From sequence record OP889247.1: a stretch of 64,000 nucleotides of DNA; one strand, 5' to 3'. The translations under genes were made by a program, and so were the position numbers. Below are positions 2,579 through 38,976 of the stretch, piece after piece (within the stretch, counting starts at the first letter, position 1; every line of letters starts with the position of its first letter). The notes beneath the pieces were generated by a model, which did no database searches, had not been told where the DNA came from, and saw nothing but the letters and a program-made list of their open reading frames with translations.

Positions 2579-3670
2579 TCATCTTTCTTTTAAATCTAAA
2601 TGAACATTATAGAATTTGTTTCTCCAATAAGGATCTTTTATTTGATTAAGAATAAAAGCAGGATTTAGTTTATAGAAAGTTCTTAATTGAGCTTCTATAA
2701 TAGGATCTTGATATCCCATGTAATCCATATAAGAGAGATATGGTTTCACCCAGTATAAAGCGGCTAGGGTGTAGATCCAACCTAGCTGAATAAACATCTG
2801 GGATTTTCCACAGTTAATGAAAGGTCCTGAGTTATAGTAAAGAGTAGGATGATATTCCATATACTCGGTAAAGCTTCTCAGTCGATCAGACATCAATTTC
2901 TTTTTCTTCCACGTTACATACTTGCTTAAGTCCATGGAGTAGTCTGTAAACGCGAATGGTGGATCTTGAATGACTATTTTATCACCAGCTGTATAATTTA
3001 ACATTACTGTTTCATTATGTACTGGATAATAATCCATCAATACTAAGTAGATAAAGTGTTGAGGAGTCAATCCCACATTGATATTATTACTAACTCTATC
3101 GGTTAAGTAATAGTAATAACTTAGTACTAGTCGATGGACATCTACTTGTATAGCAGAATAGAAGTCTTCTTGACTCTTTCTAATCTCACTGTCTAATAAC
3201 TTAGACAGATCCCAGTATTGAACATTACTGGTAGAGAAGATAGTGGAGAGTATTGGTTGTTCCAATACTTTTTCACGAGAGAGATCATCTATTGTCAACC
3301 CGTACTCATTATCGAACGGAACGACAAAAAGAGTGTGGTGATTGCTTTCAGGAAATACTGTATCAAGGTGATCTTTACCTTTGTTATATAACGAGGTAAG
3401 GTTAACCAAGCTTGCGTATTGCCTACCTTTTAATTCCACCAAATTAAAAAGAGACTCTGATCCTGATACAATGTCAACCGAAAAGTGTTGAAGCAGTTGT
3501 ACTAATGGATGTTGACTAGGAACAACTCGATTACCTAGTTGGAAATACTTCCTATAGTTTTCTCTGTTTCTAGCTATAATACGTTGTAGGTTACCAAGAC
3601 CTCCGTACTGTGGTACTGAGTATTGTAACCCATTGCTCTTTAGTTTGAAATGAGACATATGGTAACTCAA
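2579..3670 (-). CDS. Conserved phiKZ-like hypothetical/virion protein
   Basis: Long ORF convergent on the polymerase and divergent from chimallin; this arrangement is typical of the group. Confidence 0.65.
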   Translation of the reverse strand: MSYHMSHFKLKSNGLQYSVPQYGGLGNLQRIIARNRENYRKYFQLGNRVVPSQHPLVQLLQHFSVDIVSGSESLFNLVELKGRQYASLVNLTSLYNKGKDHLDTVFPESNHHTLFVVPFDNEYGLTIDDLSREKVLEQPILSTIFSTSNVQYWDLSKLLDSEIRKSQEDFYSAIQVDVHRLVLSYYYYLTDRVSNNINVGLTPQHFIYLVLMDYYPVHNETVMLNYTAGDKIVIQDPPFAFTDYSMDLSKYVTWKKKKLMSDRLRSFTEYMEYHPTLYYNSGPFINCGKSQMFIQLGWIYTLAALYWVKPYLSYMDYMGYQDPIIEAQLRTFYKLNPAFILNQIKDPYWRNKFYNVHLDLKER

Positions 3671-3810
3671 CTTAAAAAGATAAGTGATGTAGTATTATAT
3701 GTACAAACATCTAGGTTCATCCTAGATGTTAAAGCGGTAGCTGTACGTCGTATGGAAAATTCTGTCATACGATCAACGTAGGAATGACTAATTTGTGACA
3801 ATTTTTATAG

Positions 3811-3844
3811 TTCTATAATTTTTCAAACCTATATTACCTAAGTG
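3811..3844 (+). promoter_or_regulatory. Early (virion RNAP) promoter of chimallin
   Basis: TTCTATAATTTTTCAAACCTATATTACCTAAGTG contains the phiKZ early motif TATATTAC (3830-3837) and aligns with five other copies. Confidence 0.8.
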
Positions 3845-3924
3845 ATAAGTAAGAGAAGTATTTTCAATTACTTAATTAACCCGCCACTAGTGATTTAAAT
3901 AACTTTTAGCTAAAGGAAATTATC

Positions 3925-5826
3925 ATGCAAGTTAACAACAACGAAAACAACGCTATGAACTCCACCCTGGGTCTGGGCACTTCTTCTAACGGTTCTGGTT
4001 CTCCTCTGGCTGCTCTGTTTGGTAGCACCAACCTGATCACTTCTTCTCACTCTGCTACCGAAGTTGCTGATGTGAGCAAGTACCTGCAAGAGAAAGTTAA
4101 AGAGCTGCTGGCTAACACTGCTCCTGAAATCCAGAAAGCAACTCTGCCGCGTTTCATGCAACAGCTGACCTCTGACATCACTCCGCATCTGCCGGGTATC
4201 GCAATGTACACCGTACTGGGTACTAGCTGCTACGTAATGCCGATCCTGTTCTACAAAGCAGGTATCACCGATGCTACCGATACCATCCAAATGGGTAACG
4301 AAGCTCCGCGTGGCTATGCTAAGACTCCGACTTCCTTCATGACCAATGACGTAATGAAGAAAGTTAAGGAAAGCTTCAAGGTCATCGATGGTAAGACCAT
4401 GACCAACGTCGTGATCACTGCACCGATGGTAATGAACCTGGAGCGTTATATCAAAGCCGGGATCACTGGTGAAGATATGGCTGCTAAAGTTGGTCACAAG
4501 CTGCTCAAAGAGTGGCAGACTGGCATTACCAACATGGCAGCTCTGGAAACTCAGAAAGCTGGTGGTCAACTGCCCAACCCGTTTGCTGGTGGTAAGCTGT
4601 TTGGTCAGCATGAAGCCGCTCTGGCTCGTGTTGAGTCTGTTCATCAACTGGTTGTTGATGGTCTGCCTGTTCCGTATAACCTGGCTGTTAAGCTGGCAAC
4701 TGCCAACAAGAACAACATGACCAACTACGGTAACAACACCGCCAAGACCATCCTGACAACTTACCTGAACGTCCAACTGGAAACTATGTCTCCAGGTCAG
4801 TTCAACGATGTCCGGGCTCGTAACCCTGGTCGTCCTTGCGGTCCGATCGTTCCGGTTGTTGTAGCTGGTATGTCCAACCCTGGTGAAACCCTGCATCACA
4901 ATAACTCCCTGATGACTCAACTGCTTGGTCTGTTCGCAAGTCTGGCAGCTAACGCTCCGGTGTTCTTCTCTGAAGCGTTCCGTGGTCAACAGGTTGGTAA
5001 CCGTGGTAACCTGGGTGTGTTCAACAACTACATGGCTTCTATTCTGGGTCCTGTATATGGTGCTGATCACAACCTCACCAACAAGAACATCACCAACATC
5101 GCAGTAACCAATGACTGGATCCAGCGTTATGTTGCTCCTCAAGCAGTATACGCAATCGATCTGATCGGTTATGTAGATGAAACCAGTAACAACGACTTCT
5201 GGTTCGGTATCACCTCTGGTGACAAGTCCTCTACCTACGTTCGCTCCATGATCTCCCTGTGTGATCTGCTGACCGGTGGTAAGTTCTCTGCCCTGGCTAA
5301 AGAGAACACTGAGAAAGGTGCAAACCGTGACAAGTCCAAAGAGTGGGCGTTTGGTGATGCAATCATGCACCGTACCAACATCATCCGTCCTTACGGTATC
5401 GCCAAGAAAGGTAATGCTTGGTTTGATCTGGGTGAAGTAGATGGCATGTTCCTGCGTCAGCCTGAGTACTACGGTACCAATGAAGTAGCGATCAACGAGT
5501 ACAACGCTCTGCTGCAAGGTAGCATGGGTAACATCGATACTCGTATCCGTCAGTACAACATCCTGAACCGCCTGCAAGCAATGTTCAATAACGATGTGAT
5601 CGTTGAAGGTTGGAGCCTGCGTTATGTATTTAACCAGTCCTTCTTCAACACCCTGGCTCAAGCAATGTCTGCTGCTGGTACTCTGTCTGTATCCGGTAAC
5701 AACGCAGCCGCTAACTGGACCATGCACGTTCAGAACGAAATCCTGAACATGACCATGGGTGCTAGCCTGTCTAACGCGCCGGTCACTCAGAACGTAATGA
5801 ACAACGTGATGTACACCCAGTTCTAA
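3925..5826 (+). CDS. chmA: Chimallin, major phage nuclear shell protein (phiKZ gp54 / 201phi2-1 gp105 family)
   Basis: 633 aa, lying between the DNA polymerase and nvRNAP beta' genes. Has an early promoter, very strong codon bias (CTG/GGT/ACC/AAC) and its own terminator. Confidence 0.88.
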   Translation: MQVNNNENNAMNSTLGLGTSSNGSGSPLAALFGSTNLITSSHSATEVADVSKYLQEKVKELLANTAPEIQKATLPRFMQQLTSDITPHLPGIAMYTVLGTSCYVMPILFYKAGITDATDTIQMGNEAPRGYAKTPTSFMTNDVMKKVKESFKVIDGKTMTNVVITAPMVMNLERYIKAGITGEDMAAKVGHKLLKEWQTGITNMAALETQKAGGQLPNPFAGGKLFGQHEAALARVESVHQLVVDGLPVPYNLAVKLATANKNNMTNYGNNTAKTILTTYLNVQLETMSPGQFNDVRARNPGRPCGPIVPVVVAGMSNPGETLHHNNSLMTQLLGLFASLAANAPVFFSEAFRGQQVGNRGNLGVFNNYMASILGPVYGADHNLTNKNITNIAVTNDWIQRYVAPQAVYAIDLIGYVDETSNNDFWFGITSGDKSSTYVRSMISLCDLLTGGKFSALAKENTEKGANRDKSKEWAFGDAIMHRTNIIRPYGIAKKGNAWFDLGEVDGMFLRQPEYYGTNEVAINEYNALLQGSMGNIDTRIRQYNILNRLQAMFNNDVIVEGWSLRYVFNQSFFNTLAQAMSAAGTLSVSGNNAAANWTMHVQNEILNMTMGASLSNAPVTQNVMNNVMYTQF

Positions 5827-28751: not shown

Positions 28752-30056
28752 TTACTTTACAATTCTGTTTATATCCAGTTTCACCATTTTTAACTGAGAT
28801 GTGTGCATTCCTTTCATACGTTGCAACATGATCTGTGTGAAGATAAGAACTGTTTCGGCAGAAACACGGTTTTGAATAGCACCTAGTTTTTCTCCGCAAC
28901 AAACCTTGCAAAGGTTAAAGTCACCTTGTTCGCAGAACTGGGGGACTCTAAATTGCAGTGGTTTACCTAACAGCGCTTTATCAGCCTTAGTCAACACCTT
29001 TAGACCATCAGCAGTTTTATAATACCCACCTACCCAAGATCCGAAACTAAAGTCATTAAGTGTTACTGTTTCTGTTCTTGGAGTTTGACAATCAGTATCA
29101 ATGGCTTCAATTCGGTCAGTAAGAAGAATCATTACTTTAACTTCTGCTCCACCTTCACCTGTTGCGTTACCACGGTCGTAGGAACCAGAAATAGCCGTAT
29201 TGATATAAGCTGGATAGTTATCTTTATCCCAACCCTCATTCAACGAGTTACGAAGTAGTTGATACTTACCGGTATTAAAATCAGGAACCATGTCAAATAC
29301 AACAAACATTTTCTTACGGGCGTTATCAATGAACTTCTTATCAATGAAGAAGTCTTTAGATGGACCGTTGTATTGAATAGAAGCATCAAGCGCTACAACT
29401 TCGTCAATGACTTTTGCTACAGCTGATGGGTCATTAAGTTTGTTCTCTTTCTCTAGTTCGTTTAGTAGCTTATCACGAAGTTTGATTACGTCAGGATGAA
29501 CGGTAAGGACATCTAAGGAAGACGCTTTAACAAATACGTCGTTAAGTCCCTCTAAGTAATCAAGGTTCTTAGTAATGTTCAAACATTGAGTGACGGATGC
29601 TTTATCAGATGGAATAGTTTCACCTTCCTTGGGATCGTCTACCATGATAGAGTCAATAAGACCACGTACGGTACCAGAAGTAATTGGCCCATTGATGTAA
29701 CTTGCTGCGTGACCAACCGATTCAAAGAAAACGACTAGGTTTACTAACAACAATCCTACAGTCGTTTCAATCTTCTCTTTAACGAATTCATGAACTGACA
29801 TATCGACTGTGATTTTATCGTTCTTATTAAAGAGAGCTTTATCGTACTGTGCGTGCTCTATAACAACTTTCTTACCTTCTTTAAGGAAATATACTTCCTT
29901 AGTATCAGGATCGCGTAGAAGCGCGTACGGTACTGTTTTGAGCTTGTTATTGTTAGCTACAGAAGGAGTTACAATAGAGAATACTGAAAGTAGAAATGAT
30001 TTGCGAATGTAAGCTCTATTATTAATTGCTTCAAAGAGATAATCAAACTTGTTCAT
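28752..30056 (-). CDS. Virion RNA polymerase beta' subunit fragment (phiKZ gp80-like)
   Basis: Bridge-helix-like ATGEGGAEVK, DCQTP, RVPQFC..LCKVCCG Zn site, and TQIMLQRMKGMH. Confidence 0.8.
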   Translation of the reverse strand: MNKFDYLFEAINNRAYIRKSFLLSVFSIVTPSVANNNKLKTVPYALLRDPDTKEVYFLKEGKKVVIEHAQYDKALFNKNDKITVDMSVHEFVKEKIETTVGLLLVNLVVFFESVGHAASYINGPITSGTVRGLIDSIMVDDPKEGETIPSDKASVTQCLNITKNLDYLEGLNDVFVKASSLDVLTVHPDVIKLRDKLLNELEKENKLNDPSAVAKVIDEVVALDASIQYNGPSKDFFIDKKFIDNARKKMFVVFDMVPDFNTGKYQLLRNSLNEGWDKDNYPAYINTAISGSYDRGNATGEGGAEVKVMILLTDRIEAIDTDCQTPRTETVTLNDFSFGSWVGGYYKTADGLKVLTKADKALLGKPLQFRVPQFCEQGDFNLCKVCCGEKLGAIQNRVSAETVLIFTQIMLQRMKGMHTSQLKMVKLDINRIVK

Positions 30057-30927
30057 CTAGTTTAACCTTTTCCAATAGAGTTTGTGCTTTGTATATCTCA
30101 TCCATGTTTTCTGCTACTTCTTCTAACAAAGCGAAATACTGGGATTTGATTTGACCGTCAGTAAGATCAGAGATAAGCATCAGAGAAAGAACTTGCTTAA
30201 AGTAATCTAATTTGTCCTCAGTGAGTTTAATCCCAAGATCAGAAACAAACAAGGTCATTAATACTTCGAGAGAGAGAGTGGAAGCACCACCTTTGGTAAT
30301 ATGCTCCCAAGCTAAGGTTTCTTTGAGAAACTCTTTATTAGCTTGTACACGACGTTTAATGGTAGGTTCCATATATTCAGTGTCATCGTTATCTAGGATA
30401 TTCAAACCGATGAGAATACCTTTGGTAACATTAGGAGAAACCTCCTTAATCATATAAGGGAAGTTCTCTAAATCATAATCTGGTTCAACACGTTCAATGA
30501 CACGAATGAAACGTTCCTTAGCATCGATCAATTCGTCATCTAGAATCTCTACCAGTTGCATTAAATCATCCATACCGTCTAGAGTATAAATAGTATCTAG
30601 AATGTGGACAAGATCTTTCAAGCTATCTGGTGAAACATAATCGTAATCAATGATAATTCCCATCATCTGTAAACAATCTACTATGCTGTCGATCAGAAGT
30701 TTTCTGATATGCATAACAGTGTCAGATGTTTCAAGGGACTCATCAATTAAGATATTGGTAATCTGGATGTCATTTCCATTCTCAGGAAGAGAAATAGAAA
30801 TTAAGTTATACGCATCCTTGAATAATATAGCTGCTTCAGGCATTAACCTTGCAGCAAAATCCTGCCACATCTCGCCTAAATTTTCTACAGCAAGATTTCT
30901 GTCTCCAAGATCAATTATCTCAGACAT
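30043..30927 (-). CDS. Conserved virion-associated hypothetical protein
   Basis: 294-aa acidic ORF overlapping the vRNAP gene start. Confidence 0.65.
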   Translation of the reverse strand: MSEIIDLGDRNLAVENLGEMWQDFAARLMPEAAILFKDAYNLISISLPENGNDIQITNILIDESLETSDTVMHIRKLLIDSIVDCLQMMGIIIDYDYVSPDSLKDLVHILDTIYTLDGMDDLMQLVEILDDELIDAKERFIRVIERVEPDYDLENFPYMIKEVSPNVTKGILIGLNILDNDDTEYMEPTIKRRVQANKEFLKETLAWEHITKGGASTLSLEVLMTLFVSDLGIKLTEDKLDYFKQVLSLMLISDLTDGQIKSQYFALLEEVAENMDEIYKAQTLLEKVKLDEQV

Positions 30928-30959: not shown

Positions 30960-30968
30960 TCATAACAT
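30960..30968 (-). promoter_or_regulatory. Candidate late (TATG-type) promoter
   Basis: ATGTTATGA on the - strand, 33 bp upstream of the 30927 start; the same 9-mer occurs at 40766 and 59121. Confidence 0.45.
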
Positions 30969-31659
30969 GAGCAAAAAGGCCCAACAAAATGCAGCTGCAA
31001 AACGTGCTCGTCGTAACACTGCAAGTAAAGTAAAACGCAGTGATCGTAACGCTAAAGGTGTTAAGGTTTTGCCAGGTCGTAGACCCACTCGTGGTAGCGA
31101 AGCGCTTACTGCATTGGCGCAAGCTCTCTCTCGTTCTAACCTTGATGACCCGCTCCAGTACATCCTTGATGGCGGTAAAAGTGAAGGTGAATTCAATCCG
31201 CAATCATTGATCAAAACCTCCCGTAAAGCTGTAGGTGAAGTTTACAAACTGTTTAGTTATGTAGTGTTGGCTGAACGTTTGGTGCAACAGAAAGCTTTTG
31301 TACATGACTTTGCTTGCGATCTGGATCGTGTTACTAATGAGTTGATCGAGATTGATCGTCAAGTTATGCGTCTGCCCAAACTGGCAGAAATCGATCTGGA
31401 ATCTTTCACTATCGATATGCTTGATATTGGTGGTTATGTAGAGAACCTCGCTGATCAACTTTATACCGAAATTGAAGCGCTTGAGAAACACAGTTTTGTT
31501 ATTGAAGACCGTCTCAATAAAGCAGCTCATGATTTCCAAGTTTCTCACCCAGAAGTTACCGAACAAGATGCTCGTTTGGTAATCATGGAAACTGTTTCTC
31601 AGGAACGTGTTAATAAGTTCCGTCAACTGCAACAACAAGCCGAAACTGCTGAGGTTTAA
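30967..31659 (+). CDS. Conserved hypothetical protein with basic N-terminus and helical body
   Basis: AAGGAG SD; K/R-rich N-terminal 40 aa. Confidence 0.7.
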   Translation: MSKKAQQNAAAKRARRNTASKVKRSDRNAKGVKVLPGRRPTRGSEALTALAQALSRSNLDDPLQYILDGGKSEGEFNPQSLIKTSRKAVGEVYKLFSYVVLAERLVQQKAFVHDFACDLDRVTNELIEIDRQVMRLPKLAEIDLESFTIDMLDIGGYVENLADQLYTEIEALEKHSFVIEDRLNKAAHDFQVSHPEVTEQDARLVIMETVSQERVNKFRQLQQQAETAEV

Positions 31660-31661
31660 TA

Positions 31662-33296
31662 ATGTCTGAAGAAATTCAAACCCAAGAGCCTGCTAAACCT
31701 ATTAAACGGATTAAGCCGATCGAATATCTGCGAGAAGCCATCATCCAAGGTAAAGAAGCTAATCAAGCTTACTCTCTTCCTTTATTCCTTGGTAGTCTGA
31801 CTTCTCAACACGAAGCTATCCTTACTACGGCCACTGTGTACGCGCAACTTAAACAAGTTGATGATGACATTAACAGTGGTAATAGTAATATCTCTGAAAG
31901 TATTCGTAACTCATTGCGAGTTAAGTTTGAAGAACTGCAAGAGAAGCATTTCCCAGAAGTTGATCAAGATGAGCTTGGGGTAATGCTGATCAACTACTTC
32001 CAGTTCTATCAGCGTGGTTTGGATCGAGTTCTAGCTCGGGAAGATAATCAAGAGTTCATCGATCCATCAGTTCTGATGAACACATTCCCGTTCCGTAATG
32101 AACGTATTGGGATCATCAACCCGATTAAACCACAAGTAAAAGCTAAAGACTCTGTACGTGACCGCATGCGTCGCAGTAAGCTTAAACTTGCCAATGAACC
32201 TGATACATTCTCCTTGATGTTGGTAAACTCTCGTGTCTTCTTGAAGATGAAAGTTCCCACTCCCCTGGATATGGTTCTACTCATTAACAAGATTACCTCA
32301 GAGCTTAAAGGTTATGGTGAACGTTACCGTGTTTCCTCTATGCATCTGGAACGAGCACTGATTACTCGTATCCTTGTGACCTTCATGTTAGAGAAGGCCA
32401 CTTACTGGTCTGTTGCTGATATTCTTGACGCGGAAGAACTGTTCAAGATCATCAAGTTTGAAGACGTTGGTATTATTGCAACCACTCTTCTTGCTAACGC
32501 AGCTCCTAAGGGTGTGAGTTACACGATCTCCTGTCTGGCTGATAAGTGTGATTATAACGAGACCAATTTGATTGATCCAGCTAACCTTGTGGTTTATGAC
32601 GATATACGTCTACCCCAAGTGTATAAGGATCAAATCAGTGCTATCTTGAACACCGGTAAGAAGTTTACCATTGAAGAACTCAAAGCTTCAGATGTTCCTT
32701 ACACTGACTTTGAAGGTAATGTAATTGATACTGTTGTTAAGCACGACAACGGAGCTGGTGAAGTTCATATCAAGTCACCTTATCTGGCGGATTACTTTAC
32801 CTGCTTTGATAACATGGCTGAACAGATCAACCCAGAGTTGCGTGAACTTGCTGTGCAATTCCCTAATCAGAAAGTGTACGCAACTAAACGTGCTGAAGTA
32901 ATGGGTTCTATCCGAATGGCCGAATATCTTCAGTGGTTTGATAAAACCGTTACTTTGCCAGAACCTGGTGAAGATGGAGAACCTGAGGTAATTAGTCGTC
33001 AGGAAGATCCTAAAGGGTTTGATCAAGGTCTGCTGGATATGTTCAATAGCGACGATAACTTGCTGCGAGATGCACTGGATAAAGTCATTAAGAGTGTACC
33101 TAAGTTGACTTATGTTTACATCGGTATTCCTGATGATCACTGTCCTAAGTGCAAAACTCGCGCTAATGATGTAATCAAGGAGATTAATGGAGGTTTCACT
33201 CCTATTGATCCAATTCTGAATTTTTTCGACCATACCCGGATGTTGATAACGATGCGACGAGATCTCGTGACTTTACAAGAGGAAATTCTTTCCTAA
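31662..33296 (+). CDS. Putative tail/baseplate assembly chaperone (G-type, frameshift-containing)
   Basis: 544 aa with C-x4-C and CPKC motifs reminiscent of T4 gp26/gp51-like proteins; slippery T TTT TTC near the 3' end. Confidence 0.55.
   Translation: MSEEIQTQEPAKPIKRIKPIEYLREAIIQGKEANQAYSLPLFLGSLTSQHEAILTTATVYAQLKQVDDDINSGNSNISESIRNSLRVKFEELQEKHFPEVDQDELGVMLINYFQFYQRGLDRVLAREDNQEFIDPSVLMNTFPFRNERIGIINPIKPQVKAKDSVRDRMRRSKLKLANEPDTFSLMLVNSRVFLKMKVPTPLDMVLLINKITSELKGYGERYRVSSMHLERALITRILVTFMLEKATYWSVADILDAEELFKIIKFEDVGIIATTLLANAAPKGVSYTISCLADKCDYNETNLIDPANLVVYDDIRLPQVYKDQISAILNTGKKFTIEELKASDVPYTDFEGNVIDTVVKHDNGAGEVHIKSPYLADYFTCFDNMAEQINPELRELAVQFPNQKVYATKRAEVMGSIRMAEYLQWFDKTVTLPEPGEDGEPEVISRQEDPKGFDQGLLDMFNSDDNLLRDALDKVIKSVPKLTYVYIGIPDDHCPKCKTRANDVIKEINGGFTPIDPILNFFDHTRMLITMRRDLVTLQEEILS
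33221..33227 (+). other. Putative -1 programmed ribosomal frameshift site U-UUU-UUC
   Basis: The 0-frame reads AAT TTT TTC. The -1 frame is open from 33209 through ATG 33374 to the stop at 33733. Confidence 0.65.
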
Positions 33297-33733
33297 GTAG
33301 CGATCAGTCTGGTCAACTCCAACCAAGGTTCAAAGAGCAGAGCGATAAACTGCTCTTTGAAACCTACCGCAACATGCCACAAAGTAAATTAGAATTGTTG
33401 ATTACAGAGCGCAGAGCTTACATGATGAAGTTTGGTTGGGTTGCTGATAGAGAACCTTTAAGTAACACAATCAAATATAATCGAGCTCGCAGAGACTCTA
33501 GTCATCAGTTCAGTGCGGCTGCGGTTGGAGAGATGTTCGGGTTTAGAGAATATGGTGAGATCTTACCGCTTAAAGATTTCTTAACTCTTCCATGTAATGT
33601 ATTAGAAGATATCATTGATTCTGTGGCTGTTGGTAAACGTAAAGCTAAAGAAGTAGCTGACCGTATGACCAAGAAAAACAAAGGAATCCCTGAAGCGGAA
33701 CAACTTCTAAAACAACTTGAGAATAAGGATTAA
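33221..33733 (+). CDS. Frameshift extension (T segment) of the 31662 protein; includes ORF 33374..33733
   Basis: 51 sense codons precede ATG 33374, which has no SD. Contains the LKDFLTLP motif. Confidence 0.6.
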   Translation, partial: FFRPYPDVDNDATRSRDFTRGNSFLSSDQSGQLQPRFKEQSDKLLFETYRNMPQSKLELLITERRAYMMKFGWVADREPLSNTIKYNRARRDSSHQFSAAAVGEMFGFREYGEILPLKDFLTLPCNVLEDIIDSVAVGKRKAKEVADRMTKKNKGIPEAEQLLKQLENKD

Positions 33734-33735
33734 CA

Positions 33736-34284
33736 ATGTCTAAACCACATGTACCACCTGTAGTGGAACAAAGCAAAACAGCTGTAGCTCAACAGCAGGC
33801 AGTTGTCGAGAAAATGGATACTAGTGTAATGGTTCCTACAGAGAAGGTTCCCGCCACACCTGCCACTATTTATCAAAATGGTATTGATAACTTTGTAAAG
33901 TTTATCAAAGGCGAATTTAAATCTGCTAGTTTGCAAGAACGTAGTAACTATCAGTGTGAGTTTATGGGAACTATCGTTCAGATGCTCTCTATTGACTCTG
34001 AAGAAGTAGCCAAGGTACTTAACCACTTCATCGAAGTGATTCTTACCAACCCTGTACAGTTTGGTCAAAGCGAAATCTTTGCCCCACTGTACGTAGTCGA
34101 GAAAGAGAAAATGAAACCAGCTGACGAGATCCTTCGTTATAAGCAGTTCATGACTTTCATGGTAAGCTTGGCTAAGAACGCTCAGAACCGTCAACGTTTT
34201 GTAGCTAATGTTGATATGCGTAAATTGCTGAGCTATTTCCCTAGGAAAGCAGCTGACAATTTGCAAGAGTATTGCTTCCGTTAA
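33736..34284 (+). CDS. Conserved hypothetical protein
   Basis: 182 aa, AAGGA SD, followed by a terminator. Confidence 0.7.
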   Translation: MSKPHVPPVVEQSKTAVAQQQAVVEKMDTSVMVPTEKVPATPATIYQNGIDNFVKFIKGEFKSASLQERSNYQCEFMGTIVQMLSIDSEEVAKVLNHFIEVILTNPVQFGQSEIFAPLYVVEKEKMKPADEILRYKQFMTFMVSLAKNAQNRQRFVANVDMRKLLSYFPRKAADNLQEYCFR

Positions 34285-34294
34285 TGCGTAAATT

Positions 34295-34330
34295 ACCTTA
34301 CCTAACCGTAATTGGTTAGGTAAGGTTTAT
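34295..34330 (+). terminator. Intrinsic terminator
   Basis: ACCTTACCTAACC-GTAATT-GGTTAGGTAAGGT followed by TTAT. Confidence 0.75.
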
Positions 34331-37977: not shown

Positions 37978-38976
37978 ATGTCTATTAAAACATTAACTGA
38001 AATACTTGGTTTATCCCTTGAATTGAAAGATTATGAAGATCGAGTTCAGAAAAGATACGATTACATTCAAGAACAATTAAAGAAAGATCCTGATTTTGTA
38101 GCTTATGACTATTTGGAATACTGGCATGGTAGAGCTGATATTCATTACATCATTGATAAGTACGTAATAGATACTAAAGGTAACTATTATCAACTCAAAG
38201 GTGATGTCTGGACCCTCGCTCGGACTAAACATGATGAGGGGTATAAAGAGAAGAACATTAACATGGGTAACGATAAATACCGAATGTTCCAAACACATCG
38301 AGCTATTGTTACCACTTTTATTCCTAAATATGAACACCTTAAAGATATTCCATATTGGAAACTTGAAGCTAACCACAAGGATGGAGTTAAAGAGAATAAT
38401 AACTTTATTAATTTAGAATGGATGACCAAAGCTGAGAATAACACCCATGCCGTAGAATTAGGTTCCCAACTATCAGGCTTGTCAGACCCTAATACTATTC
38501 CTTATCTTGCCACAATCATTATGGAGGGACCTTATAAAGGTCAACAGTTTGTACTTGCAGGTACAGCAGCATTTGAAAAGGAGGGGATTTCACGTTCCAG
38601 CGTGAGGAATCAAACAGAAGGTAAGTATCGCGCTATCGCCGGTTGTACTTGGGAGGTGATATCTAAAGAAGATGCTGTAATGTATTCGCAAGGAACTCCG
38701 GATGGGTTTATGGATTTTCTTAAAGCCAATACCTCGTTATCTGATCCTAAAGTTAAACCAGCTTTAGGTGTGGTACAAGATGGCAAGTATAAAGGTCATC
38801 ATTTCTGTTTGTACGGAAGTAAACATATATCCGAGAACGGATTTGGGCAAGCTTATGTCTCAGGTTCTGCCAAACGTAATAAAGTTTACAAAGGGGTATT
38901 ATGGAAGTATATCACACAGGAAGAAGCTTCCAATTATCCAAGAGGATTAGATAGAGAGATATATGATACTTTATAA
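37978..38976 (+). CDS. Free-standing HNH homing endonuclease with duplicated C-terminal domain
   Basis: HRAIVTTF..EANHKDGVKENNNFINLEWMTKAENNTHA; two ~65-aa repeats (G.YKG..F.L.G ... W..I(S/T).E.A..Y..G). Confidence 0.85.
   Translation: MSIKTLTEILGLSLELKDYEDRVQKRYDYIQEQLKKDPDFVAYDYLEYWHGRADIHYIIDKYVIDTKGNYYQLKGDVWTLARTKHDEGYKEKNINMGNDKYRMFQTHRAIVTTFIPKYEHLKDIPYWKLEANHKDGVKENNNFINLEWMTKAENNTHAVELGSQLSGLSDPNTIPYLATIIMEGPYKGQQFVLAGTAAFEKEGISRSSVRNQTEGKYRAIAGCTWEVISKEDAVMYSQGTPDGFMDFLKANTSLSDPKVKPALGVVQDGKYKGHHFCLYGSKHISENGFGQAYVSGSAKRNKVYKGVLWKYITQEEASNYPRGLDREIYDTL

Follow-up and report, generated by a model that had tools for sequence, protein, structure and literature searches.

Sequence evidence for a probable, conserved −1 ribosomal frameshift that would extend a large protein of Aeromonas phage AVP1 and its phiKZ-like relatives

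Introduction

Aeromonas phage AVP1 (OP889247.1, 234 kb, genus Ferozepurvirus) carries a large gene and, shortly after it in the −1 frame, a small open reading frame (ORF), and the question raised by this locus is whether these are two genes or one gene with two products. The locus lies at positions 31662 to 33733 of the 64-kb stretch of DNA analysed here, which we call the window and from whose first base all AVP1 positions are counted. A preliminary description, made from the sequence without database searches, had proposed a hidden −1 ribosomal frameshift that joins the two reading frames into a protein pair of the type of lambda G/GT, in what it took to be a jumbo phage; the size of the AVP1 genome bears out the jumbo phage. 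We compared the locus with its relatives and find that both the slippery site and the open −1 frame are conserved and under selection. It is likely, with a probability that we put at about 0.82 from these comparisons, that a programmed −1 ribosomal frameshift yields two isoforms from the gene at 31662-33296. No description of this frameshift was found in a full-text search of the literature, subscription papers being outside the reach of that search.

Results

The slippery site and the two reading frames

The comparison set consisted of AVP1 and 33 further loci, 34 in all, and the parts of the AVP1 locus are the following.

31662..33296, + strand: upstream gene with a 0-frame product of 544 aa, phrog_4585, homologue of phiKZ gp77 (ORF list, PHROG match, invariant residues)
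33209..33296, + strand: overlap of the 0 frame and the open −1 frame, 88 nt, dual-coding from the heptamer on (33221-33296)
33221..33227, + strand: slippery heptamer T_TTT_TTC in X_XXY_YYZ phase (sequence; a phased equivalent in 34/34 loci)
33227..33733, + strand: predicted −1 extension of 168 codons and a stop, with a Pro-containing start, a fast-evolving linker and a C-terminal domain of ~120 aa (length conserved in all loci)
33297..33373, + strand: stretch annotated as intergenic, without a stop or start codon in the −1 frame (ORF list, substitution pattern)
33374..33733, + strand: small ORF annotated as a gene of its own, phrog_19747, without a Shine-Dalgarno (SD) sequence (PHROG match; the records disagree on its start)

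The codons around 33219-33230 read AAT TTT TTC GAC, and the heptamer covers the third base of the Asn codon and the two Phe codons (F521 and F522), which are nearly invariant across the family. From the first of these Phe codons it is 24 codons to the 0-frame stop. The −1 frame is closed by a TGA at 33206-33208 and then stays open from 33209 to its stop at 33731-33733, and the first ATG, GTG or TTG in it, according to the ORF list, is the ATG at 33374. Reading the codons thus bore out the preliminary description in its in-phase heptamer, 24 codons before the stop of the 544-codon ORF, and in its open −1 frame, and the fusion of about 690 aa that it had predicted agrees with the sum of 522 and 168 residues. 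Across the window, ORFs of 100 aa or more contain 57 in-phase heptamers of the X_XXY_YYZ type; a −1 extension of more than 35 codons follows none of them except the one described here (168), so that the site is more than a chance occurrence.

Conservation of the arrangement in related phages

The 34 loci come from 17 named genera, from unclassified isolates and, in four cases, from contigs of IMG/VR. The named genera comprise Ferozepurvirus, Chaoshanvirus, Ludhianavirus, Petsuvirus, Nimduovirus, Meadowvirus, Branisovskavirus, Elvirus, Risingsunvirus, Aphroditevirus, Tidunavirus, Miamivirus, Phikzvirus, Erskinevirus, Eowynvirus, Agricanvirus and Ripduovirus. With tblastn, 69 phage records had a match to the large protein and 44 to the small one, the two always adjacent, and a scan of IMG/VR gave 6 loci. 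Within the comparison set the identity of the large protein goes down to ~21%.

The preliminary description had asked whether the heptamer and the open −1 frame recur in homologous gene pairs, and both were present at every locus compared. The downstream ORF lies in the −1 frame relative to the upstream ORF in 34/34 loci, a phased heptamer precedes the 0-frame stop by 39-75 nt in 34/34, and in the same 34/34 the −1 frame is open from 5' of the heptamer to the stop of the small ORF, giving extensions of 154-180 codons. The heptamer is T_TTT_TTC in 25 loci, T_TTT_TTT in 8 and T_TTT_TTA in 1. In phiKZ itself the pair is made up of gp77 and PHIKZ076.4; gp77 matches the AVP1 protein with a pairwise E-value of 1e-8, and the alignment stops exactly at the Phe-Phe.

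The wider family was collected by a hidden Markov model (HMM) search with a 19-sequence profile, which gave 848 clusters (50% identity) with E-values of 1e-3 or better. The Phe-Phe pair is found 8-29 residues from the C-terminus in 151 of the 158 full-length family representatives, and none of the top 150 representatives in the HMM search carried an in-frame extension. A second, profile-seeded search for homologues did not reach more distant ones. The protein gp222 of Erwinia phage phiEaH2 (locus 3596-5656) has 686 aa, ~140 aa more than the AVP1 protein. It was considered as a possible in-frame fusion and rejected as such; it is a longer version of the upstream protein that keeps the frameshift arrangement, with the heptamer 69 nt before the stop and an extension of 162 codons.

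Selection on the site and coding character of the −1 frame

Immediately ahead of the heptamer's two Phe codons the loci have AAT, ACT, AGT, GGT or GCT (Asn, Thr, Ser, Gly or Ala), a codon that ends in T in 25/25 tabulated loci. The first Phe codon is TTT in all of these 25 loci, even in genes where TTC is about five to seven times commoner (TTT:TTC is, for example, 4:27, 4:23 or 3:21). Among five close phages, whose overall divergence reaches 9% over 3.3 kb, only 1 of the 76 columns at 33221-33296 is variable. These patterns strongly support selection on the heptamer at the nucleotide level.

The translation of the −1 frame is conserved immediately after the site. The Pro residues at positions 2 and 4 after the heptamer are invariant in 25/25 loci, and about 15 residues further on there is a motif of a basic residue, any residue, Ser, Phe or Pro, and Leu. 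No −1-frame stop interrupts the stretch annotated as intergenic in any locus, and the length of the stretch is roughly conserved. In five independent pairs of sequences, substitutions in this stretch fell on −1-frame codon positions 1, 2 and 3 in the proportions 23/17/45 (chi-square 15.3, p ~5e-4), which strongly supports the view that the linker evolves as coding sequence in the −1 frame.

The 0-frame tail has 21-24 residues in each of 25 loci, with a partly conserved sequence. Because both its length and part of its sequence are kept, the short form is a selected product too, and the arrangement is therefore neither a decaying fusion nor a sequencing artefact.

Start signals of the small ORF

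The preliminary description had stated that the ATG at 33374 has no SD sequence. We found none either, and an SD sequence of the AAGGAG type (4-6 nt) precedes 14/17 of the other annotated neighbouring genes. An alternative ATG at 33422 has only a GAG as an SD-like match. The GenBank records differ in which of the two they choose, 33374 in PS1 and PS2 and 33422 in AVP1, pAEv1810 and ACP1, neither with a convincing SD sequence. Across the loci the annotated starts are ATG, GTG or TTG at non-homologous positions, and in many loci no such codon occurs after the heptamer until the annotated start is reached. The profile of phrog_19747 starts near the ATG at 33374.

Slippage at this site is annotated in none of the 34 GenBank or IMG records. 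In Erwinia phage Deimos-Minion the start of the small ORF (gp272, locus 4471-5019) is placed 136 nt within the upstream gene; evidently the annotator had traced the open −1 frame back beyond the heptamer.

The hidden −1 frameshift proposed in the preliminary description is thus strongly supported by the conservation in 34/34 loci, the selection on the heptamer, the coding-type evolution of the linker and the absence of start signals.

The proposed mechanism and the alternatives

In the mechanism that we propose, most ribosomes would pass the two Phe codons in the 0 frame and stop at 33296, giving the 544-aa protein with a terminal helix of ~22 residues. A fraction of the ribosomes would slip back one base on U_UUU_UUC and translate the −1 frame as far as 33733. 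The two tRNA-Phe, moving together from UUU-UUC to UUU-UUU, would re-pair perfectly, and the slip would exchange the terminal helix for the Pro-containing linker and the domain of ~120 aa, about 690 aa in total. The ratio of the two isoforms would be set by the slippage efficiency. If the −1 slip model is right, the small gene would consequently be the C-terminal module of the second isoform. The comparison shows the site, the open frame and the conservation and selection of both, whereas the ribosomal mechanism, its probably low efficiency and the function of the products are inferred.

A stimulatory element is common at −1 frameshift sites and is not obligatory. Here, the sequence downstream of the heptamer did not fold better than its shuffles when taken as a single sequence (z-score −0.5), RNAalifold found 0 conserved pairs in 18 loci, and no conserved SD-like stimulator was found upstream. 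These results weigh against ribosomal frameshifting, as do the homopolymer of T6 or T7 at the site in every locus and the AlphaFold2 (AF2) model of the −1 extension, which has a predicted local distance difference test score (pLDDT) of 45; furthermore, the trans-frame product of ~690 aa is a prediction from sequence comparison. As no stimulator was found, slippage is probably inefficient, with the heptamer as its sole determinant.

Two candidate elements were considered and rejected. A GGAGG at 33189-33193, which resembles a strong SD sequence, is 27 nt upstream of the heptamer and is not conserved in distant relatives. It falls inside a conserved Gly-Phe-Thr-Pro-Ile-Asp region. A hairpin at 33280-33294, with a perfect stem of 6 bp and a 3-nt loop, reaches as far as the first base of the 0-frame stop and is partly kept in the Aeromonas/Petsuvirus group; both frames encode conserved residues at its position. 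As a stimulator we judged it to lie too far from the site, 52 nt past the heptamer, and dual-coding constraint can explain it.

The T run and the missing stimulator would also suit transcriptional slippage, where an extra U would be inserted in the U6-U7 run by the host RNA polymerase or by one of the phages' own multisubunit RNA polymerases, and a subset of the mRNA would come to encode the long form. One additional nucleotide in the mRNA would give an identical −1-frame product. Efficient slippage by bacterial RNA polymerases generally needs a run of ~8-9, however, and the runs here are only 6-7 nt. The seventh base is C in 25/34 loci and A in one, so the run has not been lengthened, which follows the rule for heptamers and not one where longer is better. 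The exact X_XXY_YYZ phase in 34/34 loci points the same way, although it is partly due to the conserved Phe-Phe. As the run is short and its seventh position is C or A in 26/34 loci, we consider transcriptional slippage unlikely.

That the two ORFs are independent genes is how all the GenBank records present them, and there is an ATG at 33374, close to where the phrog_19747 profile begins. The small ORF would then start on its own, leaderless or without an SD sequence, or by termination and reinitiation, and its −1 relation to the upstream gene would be incidental. A −1 relation in 34/34 loci is very unlikely to arise by chance over so many divergent genera, and independent genes would leave unexplained why the frame is open back to the heptamer everywhere, why residues are conserved in the −1 frame right after it and why the third-position bias extends 5' of the ATG. 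With the missing SD sequence, the loci that lack a start codon before the annotated start and the non-homologous annotated starts, this makes two independent genes very improbable. Homopolymers are error-prone on some sequencing platforms, and a miscalled T run could split one continuous true ORF. The same arrangement is seen in 34 genomes or contigs from many laboratories, no continuous long form occurs among the top 150 family representatives, and the conserved 0-frame tail marks a selected product; the chance of such an error is negligible.

The upstream protein

The upstream protein matches phrog_4585 with an E-value of 1.8e-86 and the small ORF phrog_19747 with 4.2e-19, both families of unknown function, and searches of these window proteins against Pfam, PHROGs and NCBIfam gave only those two. 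A search of the PDB sequences, with the single proteins and with a 61-member profile, gave no match. The AF2 model of the 544-aa protein has a pLDDT of 74.6 and a predicted template modelling score (pTM) of 0.72, and in it the Phe-Phe opens a C-terminal helix of low confidence. Five residues, D268 and the cysteines C291, C296, C494 and C497, are invariant across 61 diverse family members, and this suggests that the four cysteines form a Cys4 structural zinc site tying the middle and C-terminal segments together.

A Foldseek search of the model against the PDB gave nothing below an E-value of 0.4. The same search against BFVD matched jumbo-phage homologues and, more weakly, other phage proteins (E 1e-4 to 1e-2, probability 0.89-1.00, template modelling (TM) score 0.32-0.54 normalised to the target, with predicted models on both sides). 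The labels of these weaker matches were 'Baseplate hub assembly protein, bacteriophage T4-like', 'Baseplate hub assembly chaperone' and 'Baseplate hub subunit'; a protein labelled 'T4 gp51-like' reached an E-value of 0.18 and a probability of 0.41 only. When the 61 diverse family members were scanned singly, PF12322 (T4_baseplate) was found in 3, with a best E-value of 1.2e-5, and phrog_150 (baseplate hub) in 1.

The phiKZ homologue offers some further indications. The record of gp77 has no 'structural' note, and the records of gp79-81 do have one. In a transposon screen of phiKZ, PHIKZ077 (1602 bp) and PHIKZ076.4 (243 bp) had 0 insertions after filtering, and their neighbours PHIKZ078 and 076.3 tolerate insertions, polar effects being a caveat (10.1101/2025.11.23.690004, Tables S2, S3). 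This fits an essential, non-virion assembly factor. The name 'gp77' also occurs in other papers; we rejected these mentions as referring to this protein, as they follow other phages' numbering.

The most likely function that we can propose, and we do so tentatively, is that of a factor which helps to assemble the tail baseplate hub without entering the virion, a distant relative of the T4-type hub assembly proteins. The proposal leans on weak links, the matches between predicted structures and the Pfam hits in 3/61 members. Two further observations speak against it: PF12322 gave no hit with the window protein or 18 close relatives, and the pair adjoins a gene for a virion RNA polymerase subunit, a gene labelled virion-structural and small genes, with no tail module. 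Among the records with a homologue, OM810292.1, MK838116.1 and MF459646.1, some give it the label 'putative ZipA-like cell division protein' and one, that of KPN8, the label 'putative baseplate protein'. We rejected the ZipA-like label, which is supported by no search made here.

The genome neighbourhood

The region 31000-34300 of the window is 100% identical to AVP1 and 91-96% identical to phages pAEv1810, ACP1, PS1 and PS2. The neighbours of the pair are the following.

28752-30056, − strand: virion RNA polymerase subunit, phrog_2962, phiKZ gp80-like (PHROG match, phiKZ comparison)
30043-30927, − strand: phrog_5038 protein at the position of phiKZ gp79, named virion structural in related records (synteny)
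28752..30927, − strand: the two divergent neighbours together (PHROG matches, phiKZ comparison)
30967..31659, + strand: syntenic gene of 230 aa upstream of the pair, at the position of phiKZ gp78 (synteny)
33736..34284, + strand: syntenic gene of 182 aa downstream of the pair, phrog_14374 (PHROG match, synteny)

The family phrog_2962 is a piece of a multisubunit RNA polymerase, and its phiKZ homologue gp80 is a subunit of the virion RNA polymerase; AVP1 is therefore a phiKZ-like jumbo phage. The genes of 230 aa (30967-31659) and 182 aa (33736-34284) flank the pair in nearly all relatives, and they may belong to the same module. A DNA polymerase gene is also found near the pair in relatives. 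Further downstream, at 37978-38976, the AVP1 record has a putative HNH endonuclease where related phages have other genes, which suggests a mobile homing endonuclease.

Discussion

The products of lambda, gpG and gpGT, and their counterparts in other tailed phages are made by a conserved −1 frameshift, and neither G nor GT is found in the virion (PMC5009743). The pair in AVP1 resembles this system in its expression. In both, slippage by −1 at a heptamer close to the upstream stop would give a minor isoform in which the complete upstream body carries a C-terminal extension, and no strong RNA stimulator is present, as far as this was tested in the jumbo-phage loci. Non-virion products would be a third likeness, which for phiKZ is suggested only by the record of gp77 being without a structural note. 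On the model of lambda G/GT, the body common to both isoforms would bind one partner, and the extension would bring in a second.

In other respects the pair is different. The upstream protein of lambda G/GT-type pairs is typically ~100-150 aa, whereas that of AVP1 is 544 aa and has the putative Cys4 site. Compared with the tail-assembly-chaperone families in Pfam, PHROGs and NCBIfam, the upstream protein gave no hit beyond noise; a hit to NF047360 in 1/61 members, with an E-value of 0.0077, was dismissed as being at noise level. The pair is also not located between tube and tape-measure genes, and in phiKZ the proposed tape measure, orf181, lies far from gp77 (10.1101/2025.11.23.690004). The frameshift-extended pair with a shared upstream body, which the preliminary description had called G/GT-type, thus stands on the comparative evidence, whereas its identification as the tail assembly chaperone of the phage is not shown, given its size, its position and the lack of a match to a chaperone family. 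A role in tail assembly is plausible from the T4-like hub fold matches and the PF12322 and phrog_150 hits in distant members. Because position, size, family and fold fail, we class the pair as like G/GT in its expression logic and possibly a hub-assembly factor, and not as a member of G/GT.

The likeness to the T4-type hub assembly proteins of PF12322 consists of those same fold matches of the AF2 model in BFVD and the few family hits among distant members. The jumbo-phage proteins are about twice as long, and the AVP1 protein itself reaches no threshold. To our knowledge, no frameshift has been described for the T4 hub assembly proteins. E. coli dnaX, with its tau and gamma products, is another parallel, as slippage there sets the ratio of two isoforms that come from one gene and have their N-terminal body in common. 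In dnaX, the shift makes the shorter of the two products and is highly efficient owing to strong flanking stimulators. The shifted product of AVP1 would instead be the longer one, and no stimulator was found.

It is conceivable, but on balance doubtful, that the recoding is essential and common to the whole of the Chimalliviridae, the nucleus-forming jumbo phages, with two isoforms of a zinc-binding factor like those of T4 hub assembly, the counterpart of lambda G/GT for giant contractile tails that are initiated from the hub. Such a reading would also tie the class of T4 hub 'catalysts' mechanistically to that of the frameshifted chaperones. If the frameshift itself is real, the locus would be mis-annotated in every phiKZ-like genome, the small 'hypothetical' gene being the tail end of the second isoform, and the essential-looking phiKZ gp77 and PHIKZ076.4 would gain a defined mechanism of expression. 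It would also offer a handle on the assembly of the jumbo-phage tail or hub, a step for which no chaperone was found in the literature searched. Furthermore, the control by frameshifting of the stoichiometry of phage assembly factors would extend to a very different and much larger protein of jumbo phages.

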